Assembly: GCA_977017575.1 (NCBI GenBank)
Contig: CDRNVI010000035.1
Span: forward strand, 1 to 64,000
Length of the DNA stretch: 64,000 nucleotides
Source of the DNA: Paramoeba atlantica
Taxonomy: Eukaryota > Protista > Discosea
Direction: 5' to 3'
Position 1 is the first letter of the stretch. Every line of letters begins with the position of its first letter. Below are positions 3,678 to 64,000 of the stretch, piece by piece. The notes under the pieces were generated by a model. That model was not told where the DNA came from and did not search any database. It saw only the letters and a program-made list of their open reading frames with translations. A program made the translations under genes and the position numbers.

Positions 3678-3713
3678 CTTTAACGATAAAGATACAGTTT
3701 CTGTACCTTGTTG
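3678..3713 (+). other. Spliced-leader exon copy
   Basis: CTTTAACGATAAAGATACAGTTTCTGTACCTTGTTG. Confidence 0.85.
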
Positions 3714-13022: not shown

Positions 13023-13074
13023 GTTGTTTCTGTACCTTGTTGATTTCATTATATCTATTCTATTCAAAAACCGA

Positions 13075-13556
13075 ATGTTCACGCGTCAATTCACCTGCAG
13101 AGAACGCGACTACGAAGACCAGAATGTTGATTTCACCAGAGAAGCTAACAGGCATGAACTCGGATCATGGAACCAATTTGCCGCTAACGAAAAACTCACG
13201 AACAACAAGCCAAGTACATACAACGATTTGCTTTATACAACAGGCATACCCGCACACACATCGAAAGAGTGGAACGAGAAACTAACACGCGTCGTGGAAG
13301 AGATAGGTGTAGACACAACGCCGGATCAAGGACACGATAAGCATCGAGACGAAGAGGACAGGTATTCCAGTGTGACAGCCTCTAAAACGCAGGAACCTCC
13401 AGTCATAAAGAAGCTTTCAAACGGAATGCAGCTGCGACCCAGAGCTTCTCCCAATTCAAGTCAGACACAAGAAGCTATTCGAATCAAATCTAGCCCACAC
13501 TCGGGGTCAAAACACGAGAGAAAACTTAAACCACCACCATCAAAGCAGATAAAAGT
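13075..13556 (+). pseudogene. 5-prime fragment of family A2 (LsmAD-like)
   Basis: Near-identical to 20159-20640, then joined to the Merlin-2 5-prime region. Confidence 0.85.
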
Positions 13557-13593
13557 CTCAGCGCTTCCTTTTTACTCAGTTCTGCTTTTCATC

Positions 13594-26122: not shown

Positions 26123-26500
26123 AGCGGGGCTTTGCCTTTCTTCTGTCCGGGTCACCTTTTTCTAATGTTGGATGCCCGCCTTGAGTCTTTTGGATATTGA
26201 TTGGATTCTGGTCCTAATATAATTATTTGGTAGGTAATATTCCAATGTCCGGAAAATGAGTATGTTAAAAAAAAATGAGTATGTGCTGTTATAGAAGTCT
26301 TGAAAATTGTGAAGTATTTTCTGACATGTAATGTTATTTAAGTTATGGGCTACGTCTCTACTTCGTTGAATATTCAACGAAGCGCCGTCGGTTCGTTGAA
26401 CGATTCAACGAATGAGATTCCAAGCCGAGGCATTACGGATCAAAAGAAGACATGTCAATCAATTGAATTTTCAAATTATGACTGTCTCCAAAATAACCTC

Positions 26501-29157
26501 AACATTCGGAGCGCACACTCACGAGTGCATAAATCCACTTTGGCGCACCGCTGCGTGCTGCACGTTGTCTCAGCTTTCGGTTTTCAGAAAAAGGCATATC
26601 AAAGTTTTGCGACTTCACGACTTCAATCGCGGCGATTTGCATGTGCGCTGCCTCGGATCGCGCAACGCAAATCCATCAACATTCGGAGCGCACACTCACG
26701 AGTGCATAAATCCACGTTGGCGCGCCCCTGCGTGCTGCGCGTGGTCTCAGCTTTTGGTTTTCAGAAAAAGACGTATCAAAGTTTTCTGACTTCACGACTT
26801 CAATCGCGGCGATTTGCGTGTGCGGTGCCTCGGATCGCGCAACGCAAATCCATCAACATTCGGAGCGCGCACTCACGAGTGCATAAATCCACTTTGGCGC
26901 GCCGCTGCGTGCTGCGCGTGGTCTCAGCTTTCGGTTTTCAGAAAAAGGCATATCAAAGTTTTGTGACTTCACGACTTCAATCGCGGCAATTTGCGTGTGC
27001 GGTGCCTCGGATCGCGCAACGCAAATCCATAAACATTCGGAGCGCACACTCACGAGTGCATAAATCCACTTTGGCGCGCCCCTGCGTGCTGCGCGTGGTC
27101 TCAGCTTTCGGTTTTCAGAAAAAGGCATATCAAAGTTTTGTGACTTCACGACTTCAATCGCGGTGATTTGCGTGTGCGCTGCCTCGGATCGCGCAACGCA
27201 AATCCATAAACATTCGGAGCGCACACTCACGAGTGCATAAATCCACTTTGGCGCGCCCCTGCGTGCTGCGCGTGGTCTCAGCTTTCGGTTTTCAGAAAAA
27301 GGCATATCAAAGTTTTGTGACTTCAATCGCGGTGATTTGCGTGTGCGGTGCCTCGGATCGCGCAACGCAAATCCACAAACATTCGGAGCGCACACTCACG
27401 AGTGCATAAATCCACTTTGGCGCGCCGCTGCGTGCTGCGCGTGGTCTCAGCTTTCGGTTTTCAGAAAAAGGCATATCAAAGTTTTGTGACTTCACGACTT
27501 CAATCGCGGCGATTTGCGTGTGCGGTGCCTCGGATCGCGCAACGCAAATCCATAAACATTCGGAGCGCACACTCACGAGTGCATAAATCCACTTTGGCGC
27601 GCCGCTGCGTGCTGCGCGTGGTCTCAGCTTTCGGTTTTCAGAAAAAGGCATATCAAAGTTTTGTGACTTCACGACTTCAATCGCGGCGATTTGCGTGTGC
27701 GGTGCCTCGGATCGCGCAACGCAAATCCATCAACATTCGGAGCGCACACTCACGAGTGCATAAATCCACTTTGGCGCGCCCCTGCGTGCTGCGCGTGGTC
27801 TCAGCTTTCGGTTTTCAGAAAAAGGCATATCAAAGTTTTGTGACTTCACGACTTCAATCGCGGCGATTTGCGTGTGCGGTGCCTCGGATCGCGCAACGCA
27901 AATCCATAAACATTCGGAGCGCACACTCACGAGTGCATAAATCCACTTTGGCGCGCCCCTGCGTGCTGCGCGTGGTCTCAGCTTTCGGTTTTCAGAAAAA
28001 GGCATATCAAAGTTTTGTGACTTCACGACTTCAATCGCGGCGATTTGCGTGTGCGGTGCCTCGGATCGCGCAACGCAAATCCATAAACATTCGGAGCGCA
28101 CACTCACGAGTGCATAAATCCACTTTGGCGCGCCCCTACGTGCTGCGCGTGGTCTCAGCTTTCGGTTTTCAGAAAAAGGCATATCAAAGTTTTGTGACTT
28201 CACGACTTCAATCGCGGTGATTTGCGTGTGCGCTGCCTCGGATCGCGCAACGCAAATCCATCAACATTCGGAGCGCACACTCACGAGTGCATAAATCCAC
28301 TTTGGCGCGCCCCTGCGTGCTGCGCGTGGTCTCAGCTTTCGGTTTTCAGAAAAAGGCATATCAAAGTTTTGTGACTTCATGACTTCAATCGCGGCGATTT
28401 GCGTGTGCGGTGCCTCGGATCGCGCAACGCAAATCCACAAACATTCGGAGCGCACACTCACGAGTGCATAAATCCACTTTGGCGCGCCCTTGCGTGCTGC
28501 GCGTGGTCTCAGCTTTCGGTTTTCAGAAAAAGGCATGAAAGTATACGATAATAATTTAACGTAGTGGAAATATTAAAAGGAGGAGAATATTGATAGAATA
28601 TCGTTTTACATTATTGTTAGATTCTTACTCGTTTTATTGCTAAAGGGATATTTTGTGGGTGGGTGCCGGCGAATTCCCACTCGTAAGTTAACAAGTAATA
28701 ATTTTATTCAGATGCAACCTTTATAGGAGTACAATGCGATTTCAAGGTATAAAGTCTGTGATAGCTGTAGGTCAATATATCATATTATATTTAATTTTTG
28801 TTATTTTACTACATAAAACAGTCAAATGTCCCGGAGGAAAATTATATCAAAGTTTTGTGACTTCACGACTTCAATCGCGGCGATTTGCGTGTGCGGTGCC
28901 TCGGATCGCGCAACGCAAATCCATCAACATTCGGAGCGCACACTCACGAGTGCATAAATCCACTTTGGCGCGCCCCTGCGTGCTGCGCGTGGTCTCAGCT
29001 TTCGGTTTTCAGAAAAAGGCATATCAAAGTTTTGTGACTTCACGACTTCAATCGCGGTGATTTGCGTGTGCGGTGCCTCGGATCGCGCAACGCAAATCCA
29101 TCAACATTCGGAGCGCACACTCACGAGTGCATAAATTCACTTTGGCGCGCCGCTGCG
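26501..29157. repeat. 177-bp tandem satellite, about 13 units, interrupted at 28540-28845
   Basis: AACATTCGGAGCGCAC recurs at 26501, 26678 and onward with period 177. Confidence 0.97.
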
Positions 29158-32100
29158 TTTTTTTTTTTTTTTTTTTGAATCGCGGCATTGCCTCTATATT
29201 TTGACCCAGTAGACGAACCAAGTACATAGTAGGTCCATTGGGGGGGTATACGAGTTGAAAACAAGCAATCAAATTAGCAATTTGAAAATTTAGCTTTTTT
29301 TTTTTTTTTACTAAAAACTAGCAAACAATTCTACCCGAAATCCACCCGTAATCAAATCACTCCCGCACCAAAACTAAGACCCGTGACGGCACGTCGGTTA
29401 GTGACTTGGTACCCCCCCTTGCCCCCCTCCCTTTCGCAGAGAAACACCCTCCCCCCCCTGCGGCTGTTAAATGATTGGGGGGGACCGAATTACTCATCGT
29501 TCCCATATCCAAGGAGGGCCGTGTCAGGGACCGCCGCGGGAAGTCGGAGTACCAGCATCCGAGCCTGTGTCCGCATCAGAGTGATGTTAAGTGACGTCAC
29601 CAATTGGTGTAAGGCTTCCCCGTTCGAAAGGGTACCCCCGGAGTATGCCGCACGAGAGACGGAAACCTCCTTGAGGATCGCAAAGGCGCTTGGACTCCAC
29701 GCTCCATAAGATTCCACGACCATCGCTCCAAATCGATGGCGTGCGAACTCTGCTTCCTCTCTTTGCTTCTTTTTGTTTTCGGTGGCGTATCGTTCCGCAA
29801 AAGACCCCGCCGTCACCCAGTTAGCATCACGGACTAAGTCCGTATACTTTGGTTGCTGAACATGAGTGACGGCGAAGTCTAATACAAGAGACTGGCCTAG
29901 CCCGATTGTAGGGATGAACACGTCTCCGGGCCTGGTGAGGGCGCCCCCAGGACCCTTGTTGCCCAGACTCACTTCTCTCCGCGGGGTGAAACCGGCCTTT
30001 TTACTTCAGAAGTAAACTGTGCCGCTAGTGCGTTGTGGCGTGCGATTATACCATGCCCGCTTTTGCACCCCAGAGCGGGGTGCCTCGGGATCTAGAGGTA
30101 GCGTACATTTTTCCATAGGACAAGGCCGGGACGCTGGATAGACTGGGTCCCCTAGCCACCAGCGTGTGAGGGTGCGAAACTCCGTCGGTGTGAAAGCCAG
30201 ACCGGTTTTCTTGGAGGGGATCACAAAAGCCCATTCTGAGGCTCCTTCTCCTGTTTCTGATATCCACCTGGCCCGTGTGCGAAGGTCAGCTTTCGCAAAT
30301 GCCTCGTGAAATTCCTGGTTGGCGATGGCGTGGCTAAGGTCGCGTTGTCGGGGAATCACCAGTTCTGTTCCGGATTCCTGCGCGTCGGTATACGGAGAAT
30401 CAGTCGCCAAAGCCATACTTTTCGGAATTTTGCCGCCTTGTTGGACCACCGTCTTTCCGGCACGCCTGTTCACCTCCCGCACGGCATGGTCAAAGCCCTC
30501 AGCGTCCGCTGGGTCCCAACGGTCTTTGTCCGTTGAGAAAGCTACGGAGGCAACGTAAGCCGCACTCGAATGTTCCCCCGCCGACCGAAGGCCCAACCCC
30601 CCGTACCGCTTTTCGCGTTGCGCCTGGCGTCGCGCCCCATCACTCAAAGGACGGAAGAAGTGTTCAATAGTGCGCTGGACGGCATCATCTAAGCGTTGGC
30701 AGATATCTTGAAGTTCCGTTGTCGGGGTAGTCCTGAGCGAGTAAACCATTTTACAGAAACCAGTACAGTGGCGTATGAGGGAAAGGGCCACCTGGGGATC
30801 TTCAAGTGTAGCTATGGCCTCGAGAGATTCCTCTGCCATGTCGATTGTGTTCTTGAGAAAGAATTCGCGGCAAAATTCTGTCGAACCAATTGGACTCCCC
30901 AAAATATGAAAATTTCCTGCCGAATTCGTGTTCAGACCGGGGATGTCAGGGAAAAGTGAGCAACGATGGGAGGAAGCTGGGTGTGTTGCGATCTCGCACT
31001 TGGCCACGTTGATATGCAATCCCCATTTCGGGCCGGACATCGCGATCACGTCTAGTGCGTGCCGAACGTCGCAGGGATGGACCGGTGAGTATCCCGTCGT
31101 CTAAGTACCACAGGTTTAAAGCGAGTTTCGGAGCGGCAGTGTGGATTTGTAGGGAAACTTCTTTCATCACAAGCGAAAAGAGCAGAGGGCCCAGGGGGTC
31201 GCCTTGTTGCACCCCTTCAGATGATTCGATAAAGCGTGAGCCAAAGGTCAGAATGCTCTGAGTGTTGTAACACCACTCCACGTACGCACCCAGCTCAGGG
31301 AAATGCTGGCGTGTTAGGGCCACAAAGAAATCCCGTGAGACGTTATTGAAAGCGTTTTTGAGGTCGACTTTGCATAGCAGGAAGTCGTCATCCTCAATAT
31401 GTTCGGCGAAGGTCTTCCGACAGAGGTGGATGATGCGCTCGGCTCCAGCAGGTGTGGCTACGCCGTACTGGTGCCCTCTGAAGAGTTTTCGGGCCTTGAA
31501 TTTTGCGGAGAGGCAGGCAACTTTGCTTGCCAAGCGGCGAAGGGTTTCTCCGGCAGCAATTGGACGAACATCGTGTTCACCCTTTTTCAGAGCGCATAAC
31601 CGACCACCCGCAAAATAATCTTTGACTTCCAACGGTGCTTTTCCTGCGAGCAAGTGATTGGTAAACTTCGTAAGCGTGCCCAGAGGATCGGTGTACGCGT
31701 CGTGATGGTACTGCATCGCGGCCTGAACGTGCTCCGGCCGCATACCGAAGGCCCCTCCCGAGGACCCTCGGTGGAAAGTCGCTAGGGCCTCGGCTACTTC
31801 GTCTTCCGTTGCTTCAAGCGGTTTTGCTTCCGGCGCTGAAGGGCTTGCCACGTTGAAAGTGCTGTCAAGTCTCTGAGGATGCTTTGCCCGGAGCTTCGAG
31901 TAGGTGGCGTCGTCGTCAGGGGCAAGTGGTTCCGAAGTTAATGCTGTCATGGCGCGGGAGAGCTCCGCGTCGCGGACAAGCCGTTCTGCCCGTAAAGCCG
32001 CTTTCTTTACTTCTTCGTCTATGGTAAGCGCTTGTGGTACATTTTTCTTTTTGCGTGATACACTCGAGACAGCTTCTTTCCAAAGCGCCAGGAAATCTTT

Positions 32101-33619
32101 GTTGGACCATCTCGCGAGGCACTTCTTTACATGGGAGGCGTAAGAGGCTTTTGCGCGGTTACCTCCGCGATGAGGGGCGGGTAGGACGCATTTGGGCAGC
32201 ATGGCGAGGAGTGTCCATGCCTCGAGCGTGTTCTCTCTCGCTGCTGTGGATAAGCAACCGCAGAGTGTTTTAGCCCATTCTTGGCAACTGTTGGGGATGT
32301 CCTTGCAAGTGTTAATAAGTAGCGCACTGATAGAGGATAAACTCGGAAGGGGTGTGTCGGAGACTTTCACGTTTTCGCTTACTACGCTTTGATGAGAGGG
32401 TGTGGAAGGTGAGTTAAGGGCAGGCAGAGCATTCGAGTCCACATTGGGGCTTAGAACAGGATCGGCACTGCTCGTCGAGGGCGACGGACGGCTTTGAGGA
32501 GAGGAATGGCGGAACATGCAGATCTTGTCGTGGGTTTCCCGTTTGCCTTGATCATAATGTTTATTGCAATCATGACACCTAAAACGTCCTTCGTCTTTCC
32601 ACCACTCGTCTGGGACCTCATCACCGTGTCTGTTTGCTACGTGGTTGTGGAATGCCTGCCATTGGCCCCCGTGGGGCCCTGTTTTCCAAGTACATCCCTC
32701 GAAGGGACATTTTCGCGTATTTTCATGCGTGGTGTGTGTTTTTTCTATCGCACAGTTTTGGGTTGGGGTCGGTTCGGGGGCATTGTTCATTGTTTCAGCT
32801 TTGGGGGCGTCAGGGGAGGTAGTTTTCGACACCTGCTGGGGACGTTTACGTTTGCCTACAGCCGTTTTCGGGGTTAACTTCTTCAGGGGTGATTCAGCCG
32901 GAGAGCTGTGAACACTTGTTGACGCATCTGTGGAGTCACGGTCATCACTGTCGCCCCCAGACTCGGTGCATAACTGGGTATGTAGCTGGGAAAGTGAGAT
33001 CCCTTTAGGGCGCTTTTTCTTTTTCCTTACTTTGGTTCCACCGCTCAACGAAAAATCGAGGTCTTGAGGCGTCAGGTCGGGGAAAATTAATTTGTCGTCG
33101 TCATAATTGTATTCGGTACGAGCTATCCCCCGGTTGTGGCGCTCGCATTTCTCCTTCACAGCCTTGTTTGTAGATTTCGATTGGCTGAGTGAAGAAGGAG
33201 CGGCCCCTTCGAACTGGAAAACGGAATTCTCGGTGGGACGGACGCTGGAAAATAATTCTTCTTCCGAGCTCGTTTGCTGACGCCCTGTGTCTGGTGTCAC
33301 GCCTTCGATGGAGTTCGTAATGCTGAGGGCAATGTCTTCGGCCCGTTGTTCTAATTCTGATGAAGGATCCGGCGGAAGTGGTGTCGTATACAGCTCTTCC
33401 TTGTATGTGCTAGCGCCTTTAACCAGGTCTTTGTTTGCCTGAAACTGGTCCCATGAACCGAGCTTGTGCGCGCCCGCTTCGCGATCAAAGTTGGATTCCT
33501 GTTTTGCTTTAGAGCGAGTTAGAACCATGGAACGTGAGAAAGATTAAGAAAATAAATCAACAAGGTACAACAAGGTACAGAAACAACAAGGTACAGAAAC
33601 TGTATCTTTATCGTTAAAG
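29158..33619 (-). mobile_element. Full-length non-LTR element B: SL, 5-prime UTR, ORF, 3-prime UTR, poly(A)
   Basis: T-run at about 29158-29177 abutting the satellite; SL plus two relicts at 33558-33619. Confidence 0.9.
29490..33528 (-). CDS. Family B RT-REL polyprotein with LsmAD-like N-terminus and Zn fingers; two 1-nt frameshifts (about 31070 and 30140)
   Basis: KVDLKNAFN, GVQQGDPLGP, WYLDDG, GGLGL, RPGDVFI..LDFAVT; three ORFs collinear with intact family C. Confidence 0.9.
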
Positions 33620-34028
33620 TTTTTTTTTTTTCTTGTCTTTGTTTTTTTTTTTTTGTTTGATTCTGGTTTACAGCTGAATTTTCCGTTTTTTTTTTTTACG
33701 GGACATATGTGCGATATGTGAACACGTGTGATATAGGAAAGAATTGCCTCTTCAGGAGGTTTTCTAAAAAAAACTTTTTTTTTTTTTTGGTGAGCTCAAA
33801 ACTAGCAAATGTATGTAAAGCCCAACCAAACCGAGCAAACCCAAACCAAGCAAACCCGAAACGAGCAAACCTCAACCTGCCACCTCTCTCACTACCCCGG
33901 ACCTTATTGCCCGCAGGACCGTCAGACGCTGGCCACAACCCCCCTGCAGAACCAGGAACCAAACAAAGCAACCACGACACTTACCGCCCCACCCTTGCCC
34001 ACGAGGTTTTCCACCTCTTGGCCGCTTG

Positions 34029-37000
34029 CTACTCTTCCTTCCCGTACCCCAGGAGAGCCAGGTCGGGGCCCGTTGCGGGTAATCGCAAGACTAGCATTCG
34101 GGCCTGCGACCTCATCAGTGTTACATTCAGAGCTGTGAGAATCTGATGTAAGGCCGCCCCCTTCGATATGTCACTGCCCGATTTAGCCGCCCTAGCTACT
34201 GCGACCTCTCGGAGAACAGACATTGCGCTGGGACACCACGAGCCGTAGGATTCTACGACCATGGCTCCGAACTTAAAGTGTGCTGCAGTCGCCTCTGCGC
34301 GTTGCATGCTCTTGTTCACGGTGGCATATTGTTCCGCGAACGACCCCGCCGTCACCCAGTTAGCGTCACGGACTGTGTCCGTATACTTTTGTTGCTGGAC
34401 ATGGGTGACAGCGAAGTCGAGTACAAGGGACCGACCGAGGTGGCTGTCTATAAAGACATCTGCAGGCCTAGTGAGGGTGCCCCCCGGACCCTTGTTTCCC
34501 AGGCTGACCTCTCGTTTGGGGGCGAGCCCGGCCTTGGAACACTCCGCCGCAAACTGTGTTGCCAGAGCATTGTGTCGGGAAATGATACCATGCCCGCTTT
34601 TGCACGACATCGCGTGATCCCCCTCTGGACCAAGCGGCTGCGTGCATTTGTCCATGGGGCAAGGTCGGGTGCCGGGGTATATGTTCTCCCCAAGCCACCA
34701 GCGTACCAGCATCCGGAACTCTGTCGGGGTATATGCGTGACCGTTCTTCTTGGAAGGCAAAACAAATGCCCACTCCGACGCTCCTTCCCCCGTTTCAGAG
34801 ATCCATCGGGCCCTCGTCCGCGGGTCAGCGGTATTAAGCGCGTTGTTGTATTCCTGGGAAGAGATCGAGTGACTGAGATCCCGTTGTCTGGGAACTACCG
34901 CTTCATTTCTAGATTCGCTCGCTTCGATAGTACTAAAGAGGGAACGATCTGACACAACCATGCTCTTGGGTATTGTGCCATTTTCGCCGTCTACCAGATT
35001 TAGTCCAGCGCGATTGTTGACATCGCTCACTGCTTCTTCGAAACCTTTTGCTTCGGTGGGGGCCCAGCCATCCTTCCTTGATGCGAATGCCACGGAGGCC
35101 ACGTAAGCAGAAGAGGAATGTTCTTCTGCTGAACGGAGCCCTAGCCCTCCGAAGCGCTTGTCTCGTTGTGTCTGTCGCCGGGCGTCATCGCCAAGTGGGT
35201 GGAAAAAGTTTTCGACAGTGGACTGAACAGTGTCGTCCAGGCGTCGACAAATATCTTGCAGTGCAGATGTCGGGGTGGTACGGAGAGAGTAGACCATCTT
35301 GCAGAAGCCTGTACAATGCCGGATGAGGGAGAGAGCGATCTGGGGATCCTCGAGCAAAGTTATAGCGGTTAGGGAATCTTGGGCCAGTTCGAAGGCATTG
35401 TCCAAATGGAATTTATGACAGTATTCAGTGGATCCGACTGGGCTACCTAAAATGTTAAAATTACCCTCTAAATTTTTATTCGGGCCAGGGATGTCAGGGA
35501 AAACGGAGGCGCGAGGGGATGATGAGGGGTGTAAGGCGAGTTCACATTTAGCGGCGTTGATATGGAGTCCCCGTTGTGGTCCTTTGATTTCCAGCACGTC
35601 GAATGCGTGCCGCACATCAGCAGATGATCCAGCCAGCACCCCGTCGTCCAGATACCACAGATTCAAATCGAGCATTGGGGCTACCGCGTGAATTTCCGCC
35701 GCTACTTCTCTCAGGACCAGGGAAAAAAGGAGAGGACCTAAGGGGTCGCCTTGTTGCACTCCTTCAGAAGACGGAATGGTGCGTGTTCCGAAAGTAAGTA
35801 GGCTGTCCGAAGAGTAACACCAATCTACGTAGTGACTGAGAGCGGGAAAGTGTTCGCGAGTAAGGGCAATGATCCAGTCCCGTGAGACATGGTTAAATGC
35901 GTTTTCCAGGTCAATTTTGCATAGAATGAAGTCATTGTCGTCAACGTGAGAATCGAATGTCTGTCTGCATCGATGGATGACGCGCTCAGACCCTGCTGGA
36001 GTGGCCACACTGTATTGGTGTCCTTTGAAGAGCTTACGAGCTGTTGTTTTGGCGGAGAGACAGGCGACTTTGCTCACCAGGCGACGGAGCGTCTCTCCGG
36101 CCGCTATTGGCCGCACGTCGCGCTCCCCTTTCTTTAAAGCGCATAAGCGGCCTCCAGCGAAATAGCACTGAACTTCGAGCGGCACTTGCCCCGCGAGCAT
36201 GTGGTTCGTAAAGTCGGTCAGTGTACCCAATGGATCCGTACGGCCGTCATGGTGGTACTCTAGTGCCACTTGTACGTGTTCAGGGCGTAGCCCAAAAGCG
36301 CCACCCGATGACCCCCGGTGAAAAGTTGCAAGAGCCTGCGTTACGTCTTCCTCTGTGGCTCGAAGTGGTTTTGGTCCCATTTCCGTCGATGAACTGAGGG
36401 GTTTCACCGACGTAGCGAGTCGGGATGGATGCTTAGCTTGGAGTTTAGTGTAAGTATCATCGTCATCCGGGGCTACTGGTTCAGAGGTTAGGGCAGCCAT
36501 GGCTCGAGATAGTTCCGAGTCGCGAACGAGTCTTTCAGCTCGCATAGCAGATTTGGTTATCTCGTCCTCCGGACTCTGTGCTTGTGCGACGCGTTTTTTG
36601 TGTTGTAGGCTCGCAATTGTTTCGTTCCAAAGGGGGAGAAATTCTTTCCGTGACCACCGGGCGAGACACTTCCGAACGTGCGAGGCGTACGATAGTTTTG
36701 CCCTGCTCCCCCCACGATGAGGTGCCGGTAGTACGCATTTCGGTAGCATGGCGAGAAAAGTCCAGGCCTCAACTGTATTGTCTCGTACAGCGGAAGAGAG
36801 ACACTCACAGAAGACTTTCGCCCACCCCTGGCGACAGCTGTTGGGAATGTCTTTGCATGTGTTGAGAGGTGTCGAACAGATTGACGCCAGGGAGGGAAGG
36901 GGTTCGGCGACGGCTTGTGCGGCAAAAAATGCAGGGTTGTCCCTCGGGTCGCCCCCTGTCTGTGTAGGTTCGGAGATAGGTGGGGGAGAAGAGCAGCGGA

Positions 37001-38018
37001 AAGCGCAGTTTTCGGCATGGGTGACCTGTTTGCTTAGGTTGTAGTGCCTGTTGCAATCCCTGCATCGGAAACGTCCCTCCTCGTTCCACCAGGTATCAGG
37101 CACCTCGTCCCCGTGTCTGTGGGATACATGGTTATAAAAGGATTGCCATTGGCCCCCGTGAGGCACAGTTTGCCATGCACATCCCTGAGAAGGACATTTC
37201 CGCGTGTTTCCATTGACTGTAGGTGGCTTTTCTGGAGTGGTATTGGGGGGTTGATTGAGCCTTTCGGTATCTGAGGAATCGCGTGGCCCTGATTTCGACA
37301 CCTGCACGTGACGTTTACGCTTACCCGTGGGGGTGTTAGTGTTCTGTTCCTTTTGGGACAATTTGATAGACGGGCTGTCCATGACTCCGGTGGCATGAGT
37401 GCGTGGCCCGGGTGAATTCGCGCTGGACTCTATATTGTCGCGTTCCTCGCTGTCGGCCCCGGACACTGCACCCAGCTGAGAAAGATTGATGCCCTTCGGG
37501 CGTTTCTTCTTTTTACGGCCTTTACTGCTACCCTTTACTGAGAAGCGAAGATCAGGAGGCGTGAGATCGGGAAAAACTAGCCTGTTATCAGCATAGTCAT
37601 ATTCGGCACAGCCTTCCCTGCGGTTATGGCGCTCGTACTTCTCCTTCACAGCCTTGCTAGAGGACTTTAATTGGCTGAGTGAAGAGGAATTGGCTCCTTC
37701 GAATTGGAACTCGAGGCTTTCCGTCGGGCGGACACTGGAGAACAGTTCTTCTTCGGTGGTAGCATTCTGGTGTCCTGTGTCTGGCGTTTCGCCTTCTGTG
37801 GAGTTCTTAATGTCGCAGGCAATCTTGTCAGCGCGCTCCAATAATTCAGATGAGGGATCAGGTGGAAGTGGCGTGGTATAAAGACTCTCCTCGAATGTAC
37901 TCACCCCTTCGACTAGATCTTTATTGGCTTCAAATTGATCCCAAGAGCCAAGCTTGTGCGCGCTAGCTTCGTGCTGGAAGTCGGTACCCTGCTTAGCTTT
38001 GGACCGGGTTGTCACCAT
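34029..38018 (-). CDS. Intact family C RT-REL polyprotein with LsmAD-like N-terminus and Zn fingers
   Basis: Single ORF starting MVTTRSKAK; CPSQGC..H..H and CRDC..H..C fingers, IDLENAFN, QGDPLGP, YLDD, RHN, RPADV..LDFAVT; SL at 38052-38081, A-rich tail at 33620-33790. Confidence 0.93.
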   Translation of the reverse strand: MVTTRSKAKQGTDFQHEASAHKLGSWDQFEANKDLVEGVSTFEESLYTTPLPPDPSSELLERADKIACDIKNSTEGETPDTGHQNATTEEELFSSVRPTESLEFQFEGANSSSLSQLKSSSKAVKEKYERHNRREGCAEYDYADNRLVFPDLTPPDLRFSVKGSSKGRKKKKRPKGINLSQLGAVSGADSEERDNIESSANSPGPRTHATGVMDSPSIKLSQKEQNTNTPTGKRKRHVQVSKSGPRDSSDTERLNQPPNTTPEKPPTVNGNTRKCPSQGCAWQTVPHGGQWQSFYNHVSHRHGDEVPDTWWNEEGRFRCRDCNRHYNLSKQVTHAENCAFRCSSPPPISEPTQTGGDPRDNPAFFAAQAVAEPLPSLASICSTPLNTCKDIPNSCRQGWAKVFCECLSSAVRDNTVEAWTFLAMLPKCVLPAPHRGGSRAKLSYASHVRKCLARWSRKEFLPLWNETIASLQHKKRVAQAQSPEDEITKSAMRAERLVRDSELSRAMAALTSEPVAPDDDDTYTKLQAKHPSRLATSVKPLSSSTEMGPKPLRATEEDVTQALATFHRGSSGGAFGLRPEHVQVALEYHHDGRTDPLGTLTDFTNHMLAGQVPLEVQCYFAGGRLCALKKGERDVRPIAAGETLRRLVSKVACLSAKTTARKLFKGHQYSVATPAGSERVIHRCRQTFDSHVDDNDFILCKIDLENAFNHVSRDWIIALTREHFPALSHYVDWCYSSDSLLTFGTRTIPSSEGVQQGDPLGPLLFSLVLREVAAEIHAVAPMLDLNLWYLDDGVLAGSSADVRHAFDVLEIKGPQRGLHINAAKCELALHPSSSPRASVFPDIPGPNKNLEGNFNILGSPVGSTEYCHKFHLDNAFELAQDSLTAITLLEDPQIALSLIRHCTGFCKMVYSLRTTPTSALQDICRRLDDTVQSTVENFFHPLGDDARRQTQRDKRFGGLGLRSAEEHSSSAYVASVAFASRKDGWAPTEAKGFEEAVSDVNNRAGLNLVDGENGTIPKSMVVSDRSLFSTIEASESRNEAVVPRQRDLSHSISSQEYNNALNTADPRTRARWISETGEGASEWAFVLPSKKNGHAYTPTEFRMLVRWWLGENIYPGTRPCPMDKCTQPLGPEGDHAMSCKSGHGIISRHNALATQFAAECSKAGLAPKREVSLGNKGPGGTLTRPADVFIDSHLGRSLVLDFAVTHVQQQKYTDTVRDANWVTAGSFAEQYATVNKSMQRAEATAAHFKFGAMVVESYGSWCPSAMSVLREVAVARAAKSGSDISKGAALHQILTALNVTLMRSQARMLVLRLPATGPDLALLGYGKEE

Positions 38019-38081
38019 AGGGCGTAAGGATGATATAAAGGGAAAAGAAATCAACAAGGTACAGAAACTGTATCTTTATCG

Positions 38082-38828
38082 TTTTTTTTGTTTTTTTTTT
38101 AGTCTAATGTTTTTATGTACGTTTCGAACTTTCCACCACTTAAAACCCTTCACCCTACTTCCTTCCTTCCCCTACTTCCTTCCTTCCTTCCCCTACTTCC
38201 TTCCCCTCACCACACTCACTTCCCTTCCCCCACTTACTCCCTTCCGACTGACGCGTCCCTACTGACGGACTCGTCCGCACATGTGGCCCATGTGGTCCAG
38301 GACCTCCGCTCCCACCCCGTTAGCAGTATAAGATACTTTGTGTTGCTGTACGAGGGTGGGAGACGTGGAGGTGACCTCTGCTCCCACCCCGTTAGCAGTA
38401 TAAGATACTTTGAGTTGCTGTACGAGGGTGGGAGACTTGGAGGAGACGAAACGCATAGCCGCCGTCACGCCGAGGGCAAAAAGCGGGAAGAGGGACATGG
38501 CGGGACAGACGCGGGGACAAGGAGAAACGACGCCCGAGCCCATCGGTCTGGACCTCTGCCCCCACCCCGTGAGCAAGTATACAATACTTTGGGCTGCTGG
38601 CACGGGGGTGGGGGACGCAAGAGAGGAAAACAACAGAACGACAAGCGCGCTGACACGGAAGGTCGAGGTGGGGGGATACGGCGCAGAGGGATGATGGGAC
38701 GAGAGAAGGAGGGGGGATGCCGACAAGAAAGTGTGTATTTGAGGGGGGTGCCCTCCCATGGTCTGGAAGATGGTGTAGGGAAGAAAAAGGAAATAAATCA
38801 ACAAGGTACAGAAACTGTATCTTTATCG
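38082..38828 (-). ncRNA. Retrocopy of an SL-capped, A-tailed RNA with three repeated hairpins; no recognisable protein
   Basis: SL at 38799-38828, A-rich tail at 38082-38100, repeats at 38309, 38381 and 38559. Confidence 0.55.
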
Positions 38829-39214
38829 TTTTTTTTTAGTAAATATATGCTTTCCCATCTTACCCACTTCTCCTTACCAATCTTTCCAACTTTCCAGGGA
38901 GGGTAAGGTCTCCCTCTGCTAGGGGGGGCTTTCCCCTAACCATTCGCGCGTTCCGGACCGGGTCTTTCGACCTCTCCCAGCTTGCCTTGTGAACCCTTCT
39001 CTTGTTGTACGAGAGGGCGCAAGCAATGGGTCTGTGCCGACAGCGACACGGTCGCGAAACAGGATGCTGGCCGACGGGGAGGAGATTCACTACCCGTGTA
39101 CTACCTCACTTGGGGTACCTAGCCCTCGCGGGCTAGGCGTGAGTATAGACTCTGTCGACGCGACCAGCACCCTCAGCCTTCGAACATGCCGGGATCCGCG
39201 AGCCTTGGTTTAGG

Positions 39215-39730
39215 CTACTGCAAAACAAGTGCCGGTTGTGGATCTTCAGCCGGCATGCGTGAGACAATCATTCTCGATTGAGAACGCATCAGGGTGAGGT
39301 TAAGCTCTTGAAGCAGCTGACGGGTAGCTGCTTCTTGAGATAGAGTCCCCTGGGAACATGAGGCGCGATGCTTCCCAACCCATCTAAGGATTGATAGGGC
39401 ACTTGCACTCCAAGCACCATATGATTCTACCACCATGGCAACAAACACATGTTTTGCTTGTTCCGCCTCCTCTCTCTCTTTCACCTTGTGAGAAGCGGCG
39501 TAGTGCTCCGCAAATGATCCTGCCGCCACCCCGTTAGCGTTGCGGACTAAGTCCGTGTATTTAGGTTGCTGAACGTGGGTGACAGCAAAATCAAGCACCA
39601 GACCTTGAGCTTTCTCATAGCCCGGAATAAAGACATCGCCCGGCCTCGTGGGACAGCCGCCAGGCCCTAGGTTCCCCAGGCTTACCTCACGTGAAGGTGA
39701 TAAATTCGCCTTGGATGGTGATGAATTCGC
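39215..39730 (-). pseudogene. 5-prime-truncated REL domain of a B/C/D-type element, with its 3-prime UTR at 38830-39214
   Basis: REVSLGNLGPGGCPTRPGDVFI..LDFAVTHVQ..MVVESYGAW. Confidence 0.88.
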
Positions 39731-40409
39731 CTTGAATCGCGGCATTGCCTCTATATTTTGACCCATTAGACGAACCAAGTAGGTCCATTGGGGGGGGTAT
39801 ATGATTTTAAAACAAGCAATCAAATTAGCAATTTCATATTTTGGAGCCCAAAACTAGCAATTCGATCTCCCGTAAGTATAAGAACAATAAAAACAATAAC
39901 AATAAAAACAAGCAATCTATGCCCAATCCATTCGCGCGTTCCGGACCGGGTCTTTCGACCTTTTTTTTTTTTTGAGTTCTAACTTTCTATGAATGTACGG
40001 TATCACTTTCTTACTTACTTTCCTACTTACTTTACTTCGCCCTTATCAACTTCGCCCGCTTCTCTCCCTTATCTCCACCCCCCAAAGAAACCATCCGCGA
40101 CTTCCCGACTTCACCCGCTTCTTTCCCTCACTTCCCCCCCCCCCCCGAGCATCCATCCGCGCCTTTTTTTTTTGCAAATAATTGGGGGGAATAGTATTGA
40201 GTCTAACTTTTTATGTATGGAGTCCAACTTTTCCACAATTTCCACACTTACTATAAGTATACGTTTAGAAATTTAGGATGATTGATATAATGGCCCTTCG
40301 GGGCACATAATATTTATATTATGAGATATGATTTGTTTGTTTTGTTTAGAGATTTCATTTATTTAGTTTGGTATAGTGACACTCCTTCTCTAACCTTTTT
40401 ATAACTGCA

Positions 40410-40641
40410 CAAAGATGACGAAACGAAGGACGCGTACTCCAAGGAAGTTGCAGAAGAAAAGCTACGGAACATGACGGTATCTAAACAATCGACGAATCGC
40501 CCGGCCTTTCTCTGCTACCGCTGCCACAAACCAGGTCATTTCCGAGCGAACTGCCCGTTAAATCAATCGTCTACTCGCTTGACCCCGGGTTTTCGCGGAG
40601 GGGTGACGAGCGGCACTTCGAGTGCAAAGAGGAGTCACTAG
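40410..40641 (+). CDS. YR retrotransposon Y1 gag C-terminus with CCHC zinc knuckle (5-prime truncated; not in ORF track)
   Basis: Translates to ...AFLCYRCHKPGHFRANCPL...GFRGG...SH-stop. Confidence 0.8.
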
Positions 40642-40644
40642 GTA

Positions 40645-41793
40645 GTGCTCCCCACCCCTTACATCGCTCGTGCCTGTCCGCTGAAAAAGCGGCGGGTGAT
40701 TTGTCCAGGTCTATCATTCAGCTCATATTTGCACTCTGCAGGGAAGGTGCATGCCTTTGTGGCATGTCACGGAACGGGACTGCAGAAGCCACAGCATCGG
40801 GTGGCGGAAGTAAGGACGTACTCAAGGGCGGGTCAGGCCAAACGATCTCTAGCAGTATATCCCGCCGGAAACAAAATCAGGAAACTGGACGTGCAGTCTG
40901 CCCAGGACAAGCTAACATGCACAATTTTGAATCTACCAAGTACGAGCCCGCTAGCACACCAAATGAGAACCGCGATAAATCCCATGTGGACGAATGCTAC
41001 TTGGCTCTCAAGGGCACGACTGTGGGGAAGGCTCGAACTTTTTTGTCGGGAAAGAGGGGTACCACCAGATCCAATACACGCCTTTTTGTTCCTTCAGCAA
41101 AAGGATCTGGCACCCGCGACACTGTTGAGCTACACTCGCAATCTTCAAACCGTATTTCAGCTGAGTCAAACCGATCCTACCCCTCTCAAAATGTTTGCAA
41201 AAGCTCTACAGGCAAGAGGCGCTCTCGAACCAACGCGTCAGATGGAGCCAATCACTCCGTGGCAACTACGCCGGCTAAGGACAAAATTATCGTTAAGCGA
41301 AGGGATCGCCGCGTTGATCTGTTGGAAGGCCGCAGCCAGATGGACAGAAGTCGCAGAACTAACCCTCGAAAGATTCGTGCGAAATCAACCGAACGAAGTC
41401 ATAGTCTATTGGGGACGGAACGCCAAATCGACTCGTCTCAACCCGTACCGCTTATCGATGTGCACAGCCATACAAGGGGAAGGAACTCTAGAGATTGCGG
41501 AATACGTCCGGTTTATGAGGAAGGGTCAGCAGGTGACAAGCACAACGGTTCGGGAAATGGACGTGAAAATGAAGAAAATTCTGGGCCCCGGCTACGGGAC
41601 ACACTCCCTGAAGCGGGGCGCGATAACGTATCTCTTCAACGAGGTGGCGCTCGGACGCGTCGCTCTCTCAGACGTGCAAAACATAGCCAAACATCAATGC
41701 ATCAACTCCCTATTACGATACAACGGGAACCTGATAACAACGGCAAAGGCGCTCGGTACGCAGCGAGCTTCGGTTCTCCTACCAACCCTATAA
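40645..41793 (+). CDS. Y1 tyrosine recombinase (TATE/VIPER-like)
   Basis: WKAAARWTE (R), KSTR (K), THSLKRG, AKH, LLRY catalytic set; collinear with 48725-49909. Confidence 0.88.
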   Translation: MLPTPYIARACPLKKRRVICPGLSFSSYLHSAGKVHAFVACHGTGLQKPQHRVAEVRTYSRAGQAKRSLAVYPAGNKIRKLDVQSAQDKLTCTILNLPSTSPLAHQMRTAINPMWTNATWLSRARLWGRLELFCRERGVPPDPIHAFLFLQQKDLAPATLLSYTRNLQTVFQLSQTDPTPLKMFAKALQARGALEPTRQMEPITPWQLRRLRTKLSLSEGIAALICWKAAARWTEVAELTLERFVRNQPNEVIVYWGRNAKSTRLNPYRLSMCTAIQGEGTLEIAEYVRFMRKGQQVTSTTVREMDVKMKKILGPGYGTHSLKRGAITYLFNEVALGRVALSDVQNIAKHQCINSLLRYNGNLITTAKALGTQRASVLLPTL

Positions 41794-42432
41794 CTCAAGA
41801 GGATGTCAACCTTTGTTTCGATCAAATACCGCACGTTAGGCGATACAGTGTTATTTGCGCGCGGCGCACTTCCCGTCTTGCACGTCCCGAAGACATGAAC
41901 CTCCCCCTACACGTTAAGGCTGGAATACCCGTAATGGACGTGCAGAAAGTGAAGACTTGGATGTCCCCTGGTGCGCTTCACCGCCTGGAAACCGTGATGA
42001 GACACTTATTTGACACGCGACTTGCAGCGCAGACCGAACCAGCAATCAAAGGTAATCTTTCGGAAGCTGATGTCGTTGGTTTGCTTGACGCTGGAGTGAT
42101 TGAAACAGTCGAACAGAAAGAACTCCATCAGCATCCGACTTTACAATACGTTATTCCTTTTACCGTAGTTGAATCCGATGAGGAGGGGAACGCCCGGCGC
42201 CGATTCATATCCTGGACCAAGGACGACAATATCAGATTAAAGGACTATAAGCCCGACGTTCCTTTATTGCACCCTTCTTGGTATCTGCATAAGGCTGAGG
42301 AAGAAGCAGGCGTTAAGCGCGACTTACGTTGCGGGTTCTACCAAATCGGAGTTCCGCGCGCGGGCACGTGCCAAATTTCGTTTTCGTGACCAAGATGGAG
42401 TCTTGCACCAGATGAAAGTTATGCCCATGGGG
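40701..42432 (+). CDS. Y1 reverse transcriptase with a long N-terminal extension overlapping YR; truncated at the PMG motif
   Basis: LPLHVK, FTVVE..RRRFISW, KRDLRCGFYQ, then after a frameshift FRFRD..KVMPMGH. Confidence 0.85.
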
Positions 42433-42433
42433 C

Positions 42434-44986
42434 ACCGAGGCCGAATCCCCCGTGACGTTTGTGTCTTTGTATTTGGTCCTTGGCATTAGCATCGAGGGGA
42501 AAGAGTGCAATTTCGACAGCCTCTGTTAAGTGTTTGTCGAGCTCTTGAGGCAGTTCTCCGAGGGCTTGCGGGGGAGTAGTCCTTAGAGCGTAAACCATCT
42601 GGCAAAAGCCGGCACATTGTCGTATTAAGGAGAGGGCGACTTGGGGATCTTCTATCAGCGTTGTGGCCCCTAGGGTTTCGCTGGCTGGATCGATGGCATG
42701 GGTCCTAAGGAAGTCCGTACAGTGTTCTGCCGAGCCAACTGGGGTACCTAGGATCTCAAAATTGCCGTTGTACCGTATCTTTTCGCTTGGTATGTCCGGA
42801 AATAAAGTCGACGTATGTGCTGACGCTGGGGGTGTGATAATCTCGCACTTGGAGAGGTTTAGAAAAAGTCCCCACTTTGGACCGACCTCTGCTAGAATGT
42901 CCAAAGCTTTTCTGACTTCCTGGGGTTCCCCTATTAGCACCCCGTCGTCGAGGTACCAAAGCTGATTTAGAAGATGGGACCGGGATGCTATGTCCTCCGT
43001 TACCTCTGCCAATACCAACGAAAATAATAGGGGGCCCAGGGGATCTCCTTGCTGTACTCCCTCCGCTGAGGGGATAAAGGAATTATCAAAGGTAAGGCAG
43101 CTGGGGTTTGCGTAGCACCACTCCACCCATGGTGACAGCTCGGGAAAATGCTTACGTGTAAGGAAAATAAAAGCTGGTCTGCTCACGTTATTGAATGCGT
43201 TTCGGAGGTCTACTTTGCAGAAAGTTATATTGTCGTTTTCCAGATTGTTGAACATTAGTCGGCGGCAGAGATGAATGACTCGCTCTGATCCGGCAGCCGC
43301 TGCAACCCCGTACTGCCTGCGACCGAAGAAGGATCCCGCCTTTTCTTTTGCGGAGAAGCAGGCTGCTTTGCTCACCATCCGTCGAAGGGTTTCTCCTGCT
43401 GCAATAGGTCTCACGTCGTCCTCTCCCTTTTCTAGTGCGCAAAGTCTGGCTCCTGCGAAGAAAGGGTGTGCTTCGTCAGGAGCTTTACCCGCCAGGAGAT
43501 GATTCGCGAAGGAAGTGAGTGCTGAGAGGGAGTTTAAATTATGGTCCACATGTTCTAGGATAGCTGCTTGCAGATGTTCTGGTCGTAGCCCCATGGCTCC
43601 AGCTGAAGATCCGCGGCGAAAACCGTTAACAACTTTCTTTACCTCCGATTCGTCAAGTTGCAAAATGCTTTCTTCCAATGGTGGAAGCGGGCAGGTGATG
43701 GGATTCCCGTGAGGACTAGGGTGTTTTTCCTCTAGCTTTTGAAATGTTTCGGCGTTGTAAGGGGCTAGTGGCGCGGCGGTAAGTGCAGCCATTCCCCGGG
43801 AGTATTCACCTTGACGGGTTAGAATTTCTGCTCGTATGGCAGCCTTCTCCGCTTCGTTCTCATTGCTGAGAGTGTTCCCTTTGGAAGGCTTTCTTTCGTG
43901 ATCAGAGACAGCCTCGTCCCATAGGGTGGCGTGTTGTCCTGCAATCCAGAGTTCCATTCGCTTCATGACGTAAGAGGCATATGAAATGCGTCCTCCTCGG
44001 TGTGGAGCTGGAAGTACACACTTCGGGAGCATGGCAAGGAGCGTCCACGCCCTGGCCGAATTTTCATCTACCGCGGAGGAAAGGGCTGCTGTCAGTATCT
44101 TAGACCATAAGTGTCGACATCGATGCGGAACGTCCTTGCACGTGCTTATTGGGGTTGTACAAACTGTCTCCAGCGGTGGTAGGTTGCCTGTGCCCTGAAC
44201 ATCGTAAATAGCCTCGCCTAGGCACTCTGATGTTTGTGAGGGTGAAGTGGTTTGCACGGCTCGTCCTTTGCAGTGCTTCGGATGTGATGTTAACTTGTTG
44301 ACGTCGTAATGTCGGCCGCATGCGTTGCAGAGGAATCGTCCCTCTTTCTCCCACCATTCGTTGGATACGCTGTTCCCGTGTCGGTAAGCTACATGGTTGT
44401 AGTAAGACTGCCATTGTCCGCCGTGAGCTTGGGTTGTCCAGGAGCAGTTTTCTGCAGGGCATTCTCGTTGTCCAGGGTGATCTTGGGAGGGCGGTGCTTC
44501 GCTGTGGTGTGATCGATGTGGGGTTGTAGGTTCTATCGTTTCCTCTTTTCTTGGCGTAGCCTTCTCTCGCACTTTTTGATGAGATTTCGCGATTCCTCGA
44601 GTGTGCCCCTTAGCGTTTGAAGGTGTCATGCATGATTTGCGTCGGGCAAACTTTTTTGTAACGGAGTCTCCGTCGGACTGTGTCTCTTGGCCTGATCCGA
44701 GGACTCGTGAATGGATTGTTTCCTCGTCGCCGATATTTTCTTGTCCTGTGTCGGGTGTTTGTTTCTCGGCTGAAATCAGGGCCGCATTTTTATGCCATCC
44801 GTCCGGAATGTTGGTAGGGATCGGTGTTGTATAGAGCAAATCATTGTACGTACTCGGCTGCTTGATCAGGTGAGCATTTCCAGCGAATTGATCCCAGGAT
44901 CCTGTTTCGTGTGATACTTCCTCACGTAAAAACGACTCATCATCCATCGAGGGGGGTGTTTCATGTAAGGGATCGCCTCCGGACAT
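42434..44986 (-). CDS. Family D RT polyprotein with LsmAD-like N-terminus, 3-prime truncated at the junction with Y1
   Basis: GSWDQF..STYNDLLYTT, Zn fingers, KVDLRNAFN, QGDPLGP, YLDD; SL at 45035-45070. Confidence 0.9.
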
Positions 44987-46097
44987 TAAAAGGAACCGCG
45001 TACCTGGAAAAGAGATGAAATAAGGAAAATAATTCAACAAGGTACAGAAACTGTATCTTTATCGTTAAAGATCGTTTTTTTTTTCGTACATGGAGAAAAT
45101 CTTTGCCTCAACCGCCTCGACCGCCACCCGGTGTCCAACCGGCAGGCTTTTCTTGGTCGAGTGAGCTGGCCACCTTCCAGTGGCAAGATGAATGGGTGTT
45201 TCCACCCACGCACCTCAGGGGAGACACCCCATTACAGGGTAGTGCGAGACTTGCATACCAGAGTTTTGTTGAATCTCGGATTGCGTCAGAGACTCTGGTA
45301 GCTCACTCGCTAAAAACTCCACTGCTCCGGATTGTTAGTCCAGGAGCGCTCCTAGCGTGGAGAAACGAAGGACCTAGCCTAGAAAAAAGGATCTAGTCCC
45401 TTCGCTTCTCCGGGAGATGGGGAGGGATAAAACCTCAGCTAGCACCAATGCCGTTCCACCTCCACCGAGGGGGTAGGGTTAGCGCGCTCGCTAACGACAT
45501 ACATGCCTCGGCGACGGGATGCTACCCCGTCTATGCCCCGGAACGCGGTTAACGACGCCGCGAACAAGGGTTGAACAGGAATAGGAACGGACACATTCCC
45601 TCCTGCTAGCTCGGAAACCCTTACGTCGGAAGGCTGGAGGTCGCCACGCCCCATAAACGACAACGGTCCAATGCCGGGCTCCTGACCTTATCTTCCCCTG
45701 CTGACGCACCCAAAAGGATATGCCGTGGCAATGGCGATCCAGTTATAATTGCGGCGGCTCTATGGCTCCGGCACACGGGCATACGTACCTTGTTTCAATT
45801 GGAAAATGTATGATAACTTTATTTGATATGACAAGGTATACAGTAACCAGGACTACAGTGGGATTATAATATAAATTTATATGCTATGATAAAGTAACGT
45901 ATGACTGTAGACTTGCTCTATAAGTATTTTTCCTTAATTAGGCCTTGGTGACATCGCGCGGGCCCTCACTATTTCATTTAAAAGTTTACGGTAAGCAATT
46001 TAGGCGAGGGCTATTTACTTACGTGGCCGGCGGGCATTGTACGCGCTGTATTTTAAGCTTTTATATGATTACATTTCAATCAACAGTTCAATCAAAA

Positions 46098-47168: not shown

Positions 47169-47253
47169 GTATTCTCTAATTGCATGGAGGGGGGTGTTTA
47201 CTCGTTTGTTATATTCTTGTTAGGTTGTTATTTTGTTACGTTTAAAGTTTTGT

Positions 47254-47289
47254 CTTTAACGATAAAGATACAGTTTCTGTACCTTGTTG
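47254..47289 (+). other. SL exon copy with the same 30-bp duplication as at 13914
   Basis: Full 36-nt match. Confidence 0.85.
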
Positions 47290-47319
47290 GTTGTTATTTT
47301 GTTACGTTTAAAGTTTTGT

Positions 47320-63619: not shown

Positions 63620-64000
63620 ACTAAGACCCGTAACTAAGGAGACGAGAAGGTGATGCAATACCTCTCCTTTTGGCAGGGTGTATCCTCCGTGGGCCGCCCT
63701 ATCTGCGGCTACCTTCCGAAGGACTGCCATGGCGCTGGGACTCCACGAGCCGTAGGACTCCACGACCATCGCGGTAAATTTCATTTTCGCTGCCTCGGCC
63801 TCTTCACGTTGCTTCACCTTGTTAGTGGTAGCGTACTGCTCCGCAAACGACCCCGCCGTCACCCAGTTAGCGTCACGGACTGTGTCCGTATATTTTTGTT
63901 GCTGGACATGGGTGACGGCGAAGTCGAGTACGAGAGGATGACCTGAACCACTGTTCTTAATGAAGACATCTCCGGGCCTAGTGAGGGTGCCCCCCGGGCC
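63620..64000 (-). pseudogene. REL domain of a further B/C-type element, running off the window end
   Basis: TRPGDVFIK..LVLDFAVTHVQ..MVVESYGSW; joined to a B-type 3-prime UTR. Confidence 0.85.

Follow-up and report, generated by a model that had tools for sequence, protein, structure and literature searches.

Chains of poly(A)-spliced leader junctions in Paramoeba atlantica: candidate products of serial template switching by an R2-type reverse transcriptase

Background

The reverse transcriptase (RT) of the R2 retrotransposon, studied by Bibillo and Eickbush, reportedly makes end-to-end template jumps with non-templated additions, but we know of no description of strings of at least ten templates in vivo. 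Here we describe a candidate for such a string in a 64,000-nt stretch of DNA from Paramoeba atlantica (contig CDRNVI010000035.1 of assembly GCA_977017575.1, positions 1 to 64,000 of the forward strand; hereafter 'the window'). On the minus strand, from 29158 to about 40250 (about 11 kb), at least ten poly(A)-ended RNA copies are joined head to tail: two R2-type retrotransposons without long terminal repeats (non-LTR) of the restriction-like endonuclease (RLE) group, the broken B and the intact C, together with a hairpin RNA, H, and several scraps of 3' untranslated region (3'UTR) of 10-230 nt, with a spliced leader (SL) at the 5' ends of B, C and H. As in R2, the RT is combined with a C-terminal CCHC/PD-(D/E)xK nuclease, and R2 structures are the best matches by both sequence and fold; the reported in vitro behavior of R2 RT, which carries on end to end from one template to another with the gain of a few bases, is a further likeness. 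Unlike R2, the elements described here have poly(A) tails, trans-splicing and an N-terminal LsmAD domain, and show no 28S specificity.

Chimeric retrocopies mediated by L1 (U6/small nuclear RNA-L1/mRNA) are well established. Our chains share with them parts arranged head to tail in one orientation, junctions at RNA ends, poly(A)-dependent template choice and, at one related locus (L005), a single target-site duplication (TSD) around the whole chimera. Other features of template-switch chimeras are equally present, namely different RNAs, 5'-to-3' joins, extra bases and scraps of 8-40 nt. L1 chimeras differ in that they usually have two or three parts and depend on an APE nuclease, whereas here the parts reach at least ten, their 5' ends are marked by the SL and the nuclease is of the RLE type.

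A different association between RLE elements, trans-splicing hosts and the SL is found in CRE1/CRE2, SLACS and CZAR of trypanosomatids and NeSL-1 of nematodes, which insert at one fixed position in SL RNA genes and produce a TSD of the SL gene. In the elements described here, by contrast, the SL belongs to the RNA itself as its 5' end, the junction varies in position, and the targets include satellite and unique DNA.

Relict SLs left by mRNA retroposition are also known, dinoflagellates being the classic case. In the Diplonema papillatum genome, hundreds of dispersed SL exon fragments have been ascribed to mRNA reverse transcription (PMC10161547, supplement section 4). The D. papillatum SL is unlike the SL found here, and the relict-SL reports are not known to describe chains of poly(A)-SL junctions or to link an RT family to the fragments. 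Clusters of non-LTR elements in one orientation are formed by the HeT-A/TART arrays of Drosophila. The Zepp elements of Chlorella/Coccomyxa form nested clusters of one family (PMC3446292). Both resemble our chains in their single orientation and in the placing of poly(A) beside a neighboring copy; however, they arise when one or a few families insert successively or are added at a terminus, whereas the chains described here combine many RNA species with tiny scraps, and one of them (L005) is internal and TSD-flanked. In the literature that we searched, no description of long poly(A)-SL chains was found.

Results

A proposed mechanism

We consider the chain best explained by serial template switching of the element's RT, with the SL not being targeted, and hold this explanation with somewhat better than even confidence. 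The chain would be a concatemer of cDNAs copied from processed RNAs, 5' trans-spliced and 3' polyadenylated, and the writer of these cDNAs would be the RT of R2-type (RLE) elements with an N-terminal LsmAD. Target-primed reverse transcription would start at a nick, which for the window chain would lie in a satellite. On arriving at the template's 5' end, that is, the SL, or on stalling within it, the RT would resume on another RNA, at its poly(A) tail or in some cases internally. It would often switch after AA in the SL, at times with 1-4 bases added, and repeated switching would string full-length elements, passenger RNAs and tiny scraps together tail to head. The SL would be the natural 5' end of full-length templates and not a DNA target. 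The order of the parts on the plus strand is that in which first-strand cDNA would be synthesized.

The spliced leader marks the 5' ends of copied RNAs

Our reference for the SL comes from a JGI metagenome contig (L003), the single contig matched in a metagenome scan with an SL query, which carries an SL RNA gene without interruption. In this gene gtagtAACTTTAACGATAAAGATACAGTTTCTGTACCTTGTTG is directly followed by GTATGAGAAGCTTCGAAC, and the exon/intron boundary falls between AACTTTAACGATAAAGATACAGTTTCTGTACCTTGTTG and GTATGAGAAGC; this gives an SL of 38 nt, which we number A1 A2 C3 ... A7 A8 C9. The SL core ACAGTTTCTGTACC is present in 11 copies in the window, against 0.39 expected, and none of 100 shuffles attains 11, so the pattern is not due to chance. 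A scan of the window against Rfam gave no family match, SL RNA included. The window reads as DNA of a trans-splicing euglenozoan, and one other than D. papillatum because its SL is different.

Each SL in the chain is followed by the element's own 5' untranslated region (5'UTR), never by the SL intron. This arrangement at the 5' end, together with poly(A) at the 3' end, identifies the parts of the chain as processed RNAs. All four minus-strand SL heads between 29 and 46 kb touch a T-run, as every head of an RLE element or of H does, whereas the window's five SL heads that belong to non-RLE elements (3689, 13925, 47265, 6284 and 58834) all lack a poly(A) upstream. Beside the full SL of B, at 33558-33583, stand two partial SL repeats, nt 23-38 and then nt 29-38. 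Re-trans-splicing of a retrocopy would suit the former, which follows an internal CAG; the latter follows TG, for which RT stutter is the better fit.

At three places in the window (3660-3750, 13900-13990 and 47235-47330), an SL beginning at C3 lies between two 30-nt direct repeats at the 5' end of a plus-strand repeated element. These SLs have no poly(A) upstream, and the arrangement looks like a different mode of SL capture.

Junction positions are variable and follow AA

Eleven related loci were retrieved from nine contigs (18-185 kb) of one ENA assembly, and nine of them were analyzed; they show the same SL and the same chain architecture as the window (L numbers below denote loci, W the window). 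For a CDP-alcohol phosphatidyltransferase gene in L001, a homology search returned no close match. Eleven independent poly(A)-SL junctions are available from the window, L001, L004, L006-L009 and L012. The SL is full-length at W 33620, L001 and L004, where A1A2 merge into the tail; it begins at nt 9 at W 38081 and W 38828, and at nt 8, after an extra TAG, at L009. Junctions beginning at nt 3 are preceded by the extra bases CGAT (W 45074), GCAG (L006) or CT (L008), so that four of the eleven junctions carry 2-4 extra bases. Two are messy composites of partial SLs, one at L007 and one at L004, where the junction runs on into a second, partial SL copy. In the tandem array of L012, each unit begins with SL nt 34-38 directly after the preceding tail. 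An extra G, as a copy of the cap, was considered as a junction mark; given the extra bases listed above, it is not general.

Both clean classes of junction follow AA in the SL, either A1A2 or A7A8, and a two-base pairing between the end of the cDNA and a poly(A) acceptor is therefore possible. The identical start of two window junctions (CGATAAAG), pointed out in a preliminary description of this DNA, is real and has a third instance at L009; it is better read as a hot spot of RT stopping or jumping after A7A8.

The same description proposed sorting the 3' flanks into SL and other sequence. Our census of these flanks is partial and covers A-runs of at least 10 in the element sense in the window, L001, L002 and L004-L008. 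An SL follows the A-run at seven places, an eighth (W 38829-38837) having only nine A's, and 5'-truncated RLE coding sequence follows at six; 3'UTR fragments (8-282 nt) follow at many more places. The flanks are thus not confined to the SL: poly(A) adjoins truncated coding sequence about as often, and element tails also adjoin satellite and unique DNA. The chain 3' ends that can be read are GCTGCG in the satellite, ...AAATATC (W 63438) and TAATTCG... (L001).

Scraps, internal joins and a chain flanked by a target-site duplication

Some members of the chains are extremely short. A 10-nt scrap in the window, CAAAGACAAG, is the 3' end of a recurrent RNA and stands as A13-CAAAGACAAG-A12; a scrap in L006 reads A8-TGAGAAGC-A11. 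In L009, two pieces from inside a 3'UTR, 21 and 12 nt long, have a common 5' stop and lack a natural 3' end, and at 39731/39732 of the window the interior of a truncated element, F, is joined to a 3'UTR end through a 19-nt stutter, with no tail. Being too short or devoid of natural 3' ends, such scraps are not ordinary insertions. Furthermore, chains of L006 include retrocopies of the intron half of the SL RNA (GTATGAGAAGCTTCGAAC... plus the 3' stem-loop) at 7399-7490 and 6861-6900; the copy at 7418-7490 lies inside the chain, and one copy ends in A7.

The points at which 3'UTR fragments are truncated on their 5' side are concentrated in about 60 nt around a GGTC-GAAA-GACC hairpin of the 3'UTR (window 38946-39030, L005 15301, L006 7056, L008 13688 and L009 13397-13433), which suggests that this hairpin is an RT stall site.

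The L005 chain (13002-15488, 2.5 kb) has five or six members and lies between 165-bp direct repeats of unique sequence, 12837-13001 and 15489-15653, with 99.4% identity over a 180-nt alignment. Its 5' end, beside the upstream repeat, is a bare A14-G-A10. A last jump onto poly(A), followed by termination, would leave such an orphan tail, while a founder with later insertions would require a founder without a body. No TSD was found around the L001 chain. Adjacent copies of the same family in L008 show 99.3% identity, against 98.3% to the L005 copy, a difference too weak for dating the events.

R2-type enzymes with an LsmAD domain

The open reading frame (ORF) of C encodes 1,329 amino acids from its ATG and includes LsmAD, zinc fingers, RT, and a CCHC plus REL nuclease. 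The reading frame of B is broken near 31000 and near 29990, leaving ORFs at 30946-33528, 30006-31049 and 29490-29972. The Pfam family RVT_1 is matched by C, B and a further element, D (E-values of 4e-16, 5e-12 and 6e-17, respectively), and an N-terminal LsmAD of the ataxin-2/Pbp1 type scores above the Pfam threshold in C (37700-38018) and B (33240-33410). The best sequence matches of the enzyme in the PDB are R2 proteins. CCHC, RHN, RPAD and LDFAV motifs can be read in the translated C-terminal 260 residues. A phmmer search of the REL domain against the PDB returned no match, so a fold search was needed: the six best PDB fold matches of an AlphaFold2 model of the C-terminal domain (pLDDT 65, pTM 0.70) are R2 proteins (E of 4.5e-5 to 3.4e-3), and the next are the PD-(D/E)xK nucleases MspJI and FokI. 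B, C and D are thus R2-type (RLE) non-LTR elements.

Relatives at 51-67% identity are found in one ENA assembly, and in more distant ones (P0018, P0021) a PABC domain is present. LsmAD in the ORFs and PABC in the distant relatives suggest a link to the poly(A) machinery. No trypanosomatid names occur among the best 120 homologues listed, and no exact match of the C protein was found in public assemblies.

A conserved hairpin and its possible mimic

Within its REL-coding region, each RLE copy has a hairpin of 80 nt (window minus strand 34333-34423 in C, 29795-29885 in B, 39507-39597 and 63840-63930). Across 16 sequences, pairing holds for 96.8% of cells, seven pairs are changed on both sides, and one pair occurs in five pair types; none of 500 shuffles attains the observed covariation score, and slid controls pair 30-42% of cells. 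The three hairpins of H (38296-38380, 38368-38452 and 38545-38625) resemble the hairpin of the REL region: the loop motifs (CAGCAAC ... AAAGTAT ... GCTAAC) are shared and the stems are different. Pieces similar to H recur in the chains of L008 and L009. H is probably a passenger akin to a short interspersed element. The hairpin of the REL region may be a recognition element of the RT and the H hairpins its mimic, in which case H would plausibly be a non-autonomous passenger imitating this element.

Anatomy of the window chain

The coordinates of the chain and of its surroundings are given in Table 1. According to tblastn, all RLE pieces of one locus have a common orientation. The order of junctions given in the preliminary description, from the satellite through B, C and the hairpin RNA to a REL fragment, is borne out, all junctions being present at the positions it named. 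That description missed the piece E, three scraps between B and C, and the extension of the chain to about 40250. The sequence of E is contiguous within the 3'UTR of an L004-type element. F is 90% identical to L006 17014-17638, and the 19-nt stutter mentioned above stands at its truncated end.

At about 40250 the chain is cut by a plus-strand element of the tyrosine-recombinase type; the fragment of this element (40251-42432) adjoins the chain's 5' side and the truncated 3' side of D. The 5' end of D consists of SL nt 3-38 (45035-45070), the extra CGAT (45071-45074) and T10 (45075-45084), which agrees with the A-run/SL junction previously placed at 45035-45085; this T10 is the poly(A) of another RNA copy upstream of D.

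The satellite directly adjoins the 3' end of the chain, at GCTGCG. As to a TSD matching the satellite break beyond the far end, a check that the preliminary description had suggested, no second satellite copy or TSD was found in the window to the right of 29158, over 35 kb. The satellite array itself is broken by a 307-bp AT-rich insert at 28537-28843.

Table 1. Features of the poly(A)-SL chain and adjacent sequence in the window
Feature	Position	Strand	Remarks
177-bp satellite array	26499-29157		Flanks chain 3' end; self-BLAST offsets of 177 bp, 95-99% identity
Poly(A), T19 on plus strand	29158-29176	-	Chain-satellite join; first T possibly the satellite's own
E, 118-nt terminal module of RLE-element 3'UTR, separate poly(A)-ended piece	29177-29294	-	87% identity to 39732-39842
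Poly(A) of B, T15	29295-29309	-	
Element B, R2-type (RLE) non-LTR retrotransposon	29310-33583	-	ORFs, Pfam, tblastn; LsmAD, RT and REL regions
Full-length 38-nt SL, 5' end of B	33584-33621	-	Numbering from L003 SL RNA gene
Four poly(A) runs (T12, T13, T12, T14) between scraps of 10, 31 and 77 nt	33620-33788	-	
Element C, intact RLE retrotransposon	33789-38051	-	ORF 34032-38018
SL nt 9-38, 5' end of C	38052-38081	-	Begins CGATAAAG
Poly(A) of H, interrupted	38082-38100	-	T8-G-T10 on plus strand, A10-C-A8 in sense
H, non-coding SL-headed poly(A)-ended RNA copy	38101-38798	-	Three hairpins
SL nt 9-38, 5' end of H	38799-38828	-	
Poly(A) of F, T9	38829-38837	-	
F, 5'-truncated RLE element, REL-coding part and 3'UTR	38838-39731	-	tblastn, amino acids 92-254 of REL query
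229-nt 3'UTR fragment, L004-type RLE element	39732-39960	-	91% identity to L004 12567-12797; joins F interior without poly(A)
T13, 190-nt RLE 3'UTR tail fragment, T10 (40164-40173), further tail fragment	39961-40250	-	
Element D, 3'-truncated RLE element	42419-45084	-	Includes SL and T10; RVT_1 match

Discussion

Competing explanations

The preliminary description weighed a single target-primed event with jumps from each SL end to the next poly(A) against serial SL-targeted insertions of the CRE/SLACS/CZAR kind, each duplicating about 30 nt of SL. In the latter, an endonuclease would recognize the SL on resident copies and each insertion would re-create its target. The enzyme indeed belongs to the RLE group, many members of which are site-specific, two window junctions and one in L009 begin at nt 8 or 9, and both junction classes follow AA before C. 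However, the SL is followed by the element's own 5'UTR and in no chain by the SL intron, the junctions vary (nt 1-3, 8, 9 and 34) and poly(A) adjoins non-SL sequence at least as often as SL, all of which departs from insertion of the CRE/SLACS/CZAR type. In addition, no remnant of SL nt 1-8 is present on the upstream member, at the 5' end of F; the SL heads of non-RLE elements in the window are untouched; the only SL RNA gene seen is uninterrupted; and chains end in satellite and unique DNA. We consider SL targeting largely refuted and very improbable. The jumping mechanism of the earlier proposal fares better, with support from the related loci in the form of tails on 5'-truncated coding sequence, 8-40-nt scraps, internal joins, the SL RNA intron copy and the orphan poly(A); its further claim, that one event wrote all 11 kb, is not established by these data. 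The satellite at the 3' end, which had been taken to favor jumping, is a valid argument but a weak one. Equally remote from our expectation is that the array grew by terminal additions at a broken or natural chromosome end, in the manner of HeT-A/TART or Zepp, with 5' erosion in between and a later internal position. Poly(A) tails that point toward the satellite with 5' ends away from it, the many 5'-truncated members and a window chain without a closing TSD would suit such growth; yet the same architecture recurs at many internal loci, L005 is TSD-flanked on both sides in unique DNA, no telomere repeats were seen, and internal fragments without 3' ends are left unexplained. Least credible of all is an artefact of assembly or cDNA contamination: although the junctions are composed of high-copy words and no read bridges them, the same type of junction occurs at nine loci of the independent ENA assembly, embedded among satellites, DNA transposons and ordinary genes, and the TSD-flanked insertion at L005 is a genomic signature.

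The main rival to template switching is a series of independent RLE-driven insertions, primed at or in a resident poly(A) tract or at the same re-cleavable site, by which chains would grow over time like nested or tail-directed clusters and scraps would be extremely 5'-truncated insertions; we rate its chances well short of even. It accounts for the spacing from one poly(A) to the next and for the orientation that the members have in common. Several observations weigh against our preferred explanation, and some of these speak for the rival. The priming nick of L005 lies at the very end of an older A20 tract, with the second TSD copy preceded by A10-TAAAA, so that occupied tails have been re-used at least once, as serial insertion predicts. 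B is broken and C intact, as would be expected if their ages differ, although B may just as well have been copied from a transcript that was defective beforehand. None of the Logan contigs from four runs bridges a junction of the window chain, all stopping inside SL or T-run repeats; they cover the body of C at about 99.7% identity, and where they differ from the window at full depth, a different strain or copy, or errors in the consensus, may be the reason. Finally, L012 (ctg3673c), L002 (ctg3706c) and L010/L011 (ctg3700c) are tandem arrays on circular contigs, with periods of about 3,994, 4,476 and 10,550 bp, respectively, and their identical RLE or composite units with identical junctions point to additional amplification of the unit at the DNA level and not to jumps made again and again. 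Serial insertion, for its part, would require the member farthest 5' to be the founder, whereas the L005 chain opens with its bare poly(A); fragments of 8-21 nt that lack natural 3' ends do not amount to complete insertions, and neither do joins of one interior to another; and the three readable chain ends lie at sites that are not A-rich (GCTGCG in satellite, ATATC and TAATTCG), so that A-tracts are not required.

Template switching therefore remains better supported than the writing of all 11 kb at once: the window chain has no closing TSD or satellite copy, without which a single event of more than 11 kb is unproven, B and C differ in state and no contig bridges the chain. The bolder version, in which each chain was written in a single event, with the LsmAD N-terminus and the conserved hairpin guiding a routine run-off from the capped SL onto the next tail, is one that we put forward tentatively, as possible but rather doubtful.

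Implications

R2-type template jumping is known mainly from the test tube. Here, the SL marks true 5' ends of RNAs in genomic DNA, and each junction records the point at which the RT left one RNA and the point of its arrival on the next. For an RLE RT, this allows a genome-wide reading of frequency, of template choice and of position rules (after AA, with 0-4 added bases). The chains are thus of interest for the mechanism of retrotransposition, even though we infer its key step, the switching. They also bear on gene-insertion tools based on R2, for which the formation of concatemers is a practical concern, and they suggest by what mechanism the scattered SL fragments and the repeat-rich genomes that have been reported in diplonemid-like protists could arise. 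If each chain was indeed written in a single event, chains of at least 11 kb and at least ten templates would be snapshots of the RNAs that a single retrotransposition particle contained; no longer natural concatemers from template jumping would be known, and their formation would be a major route of genome growth in this lineage.

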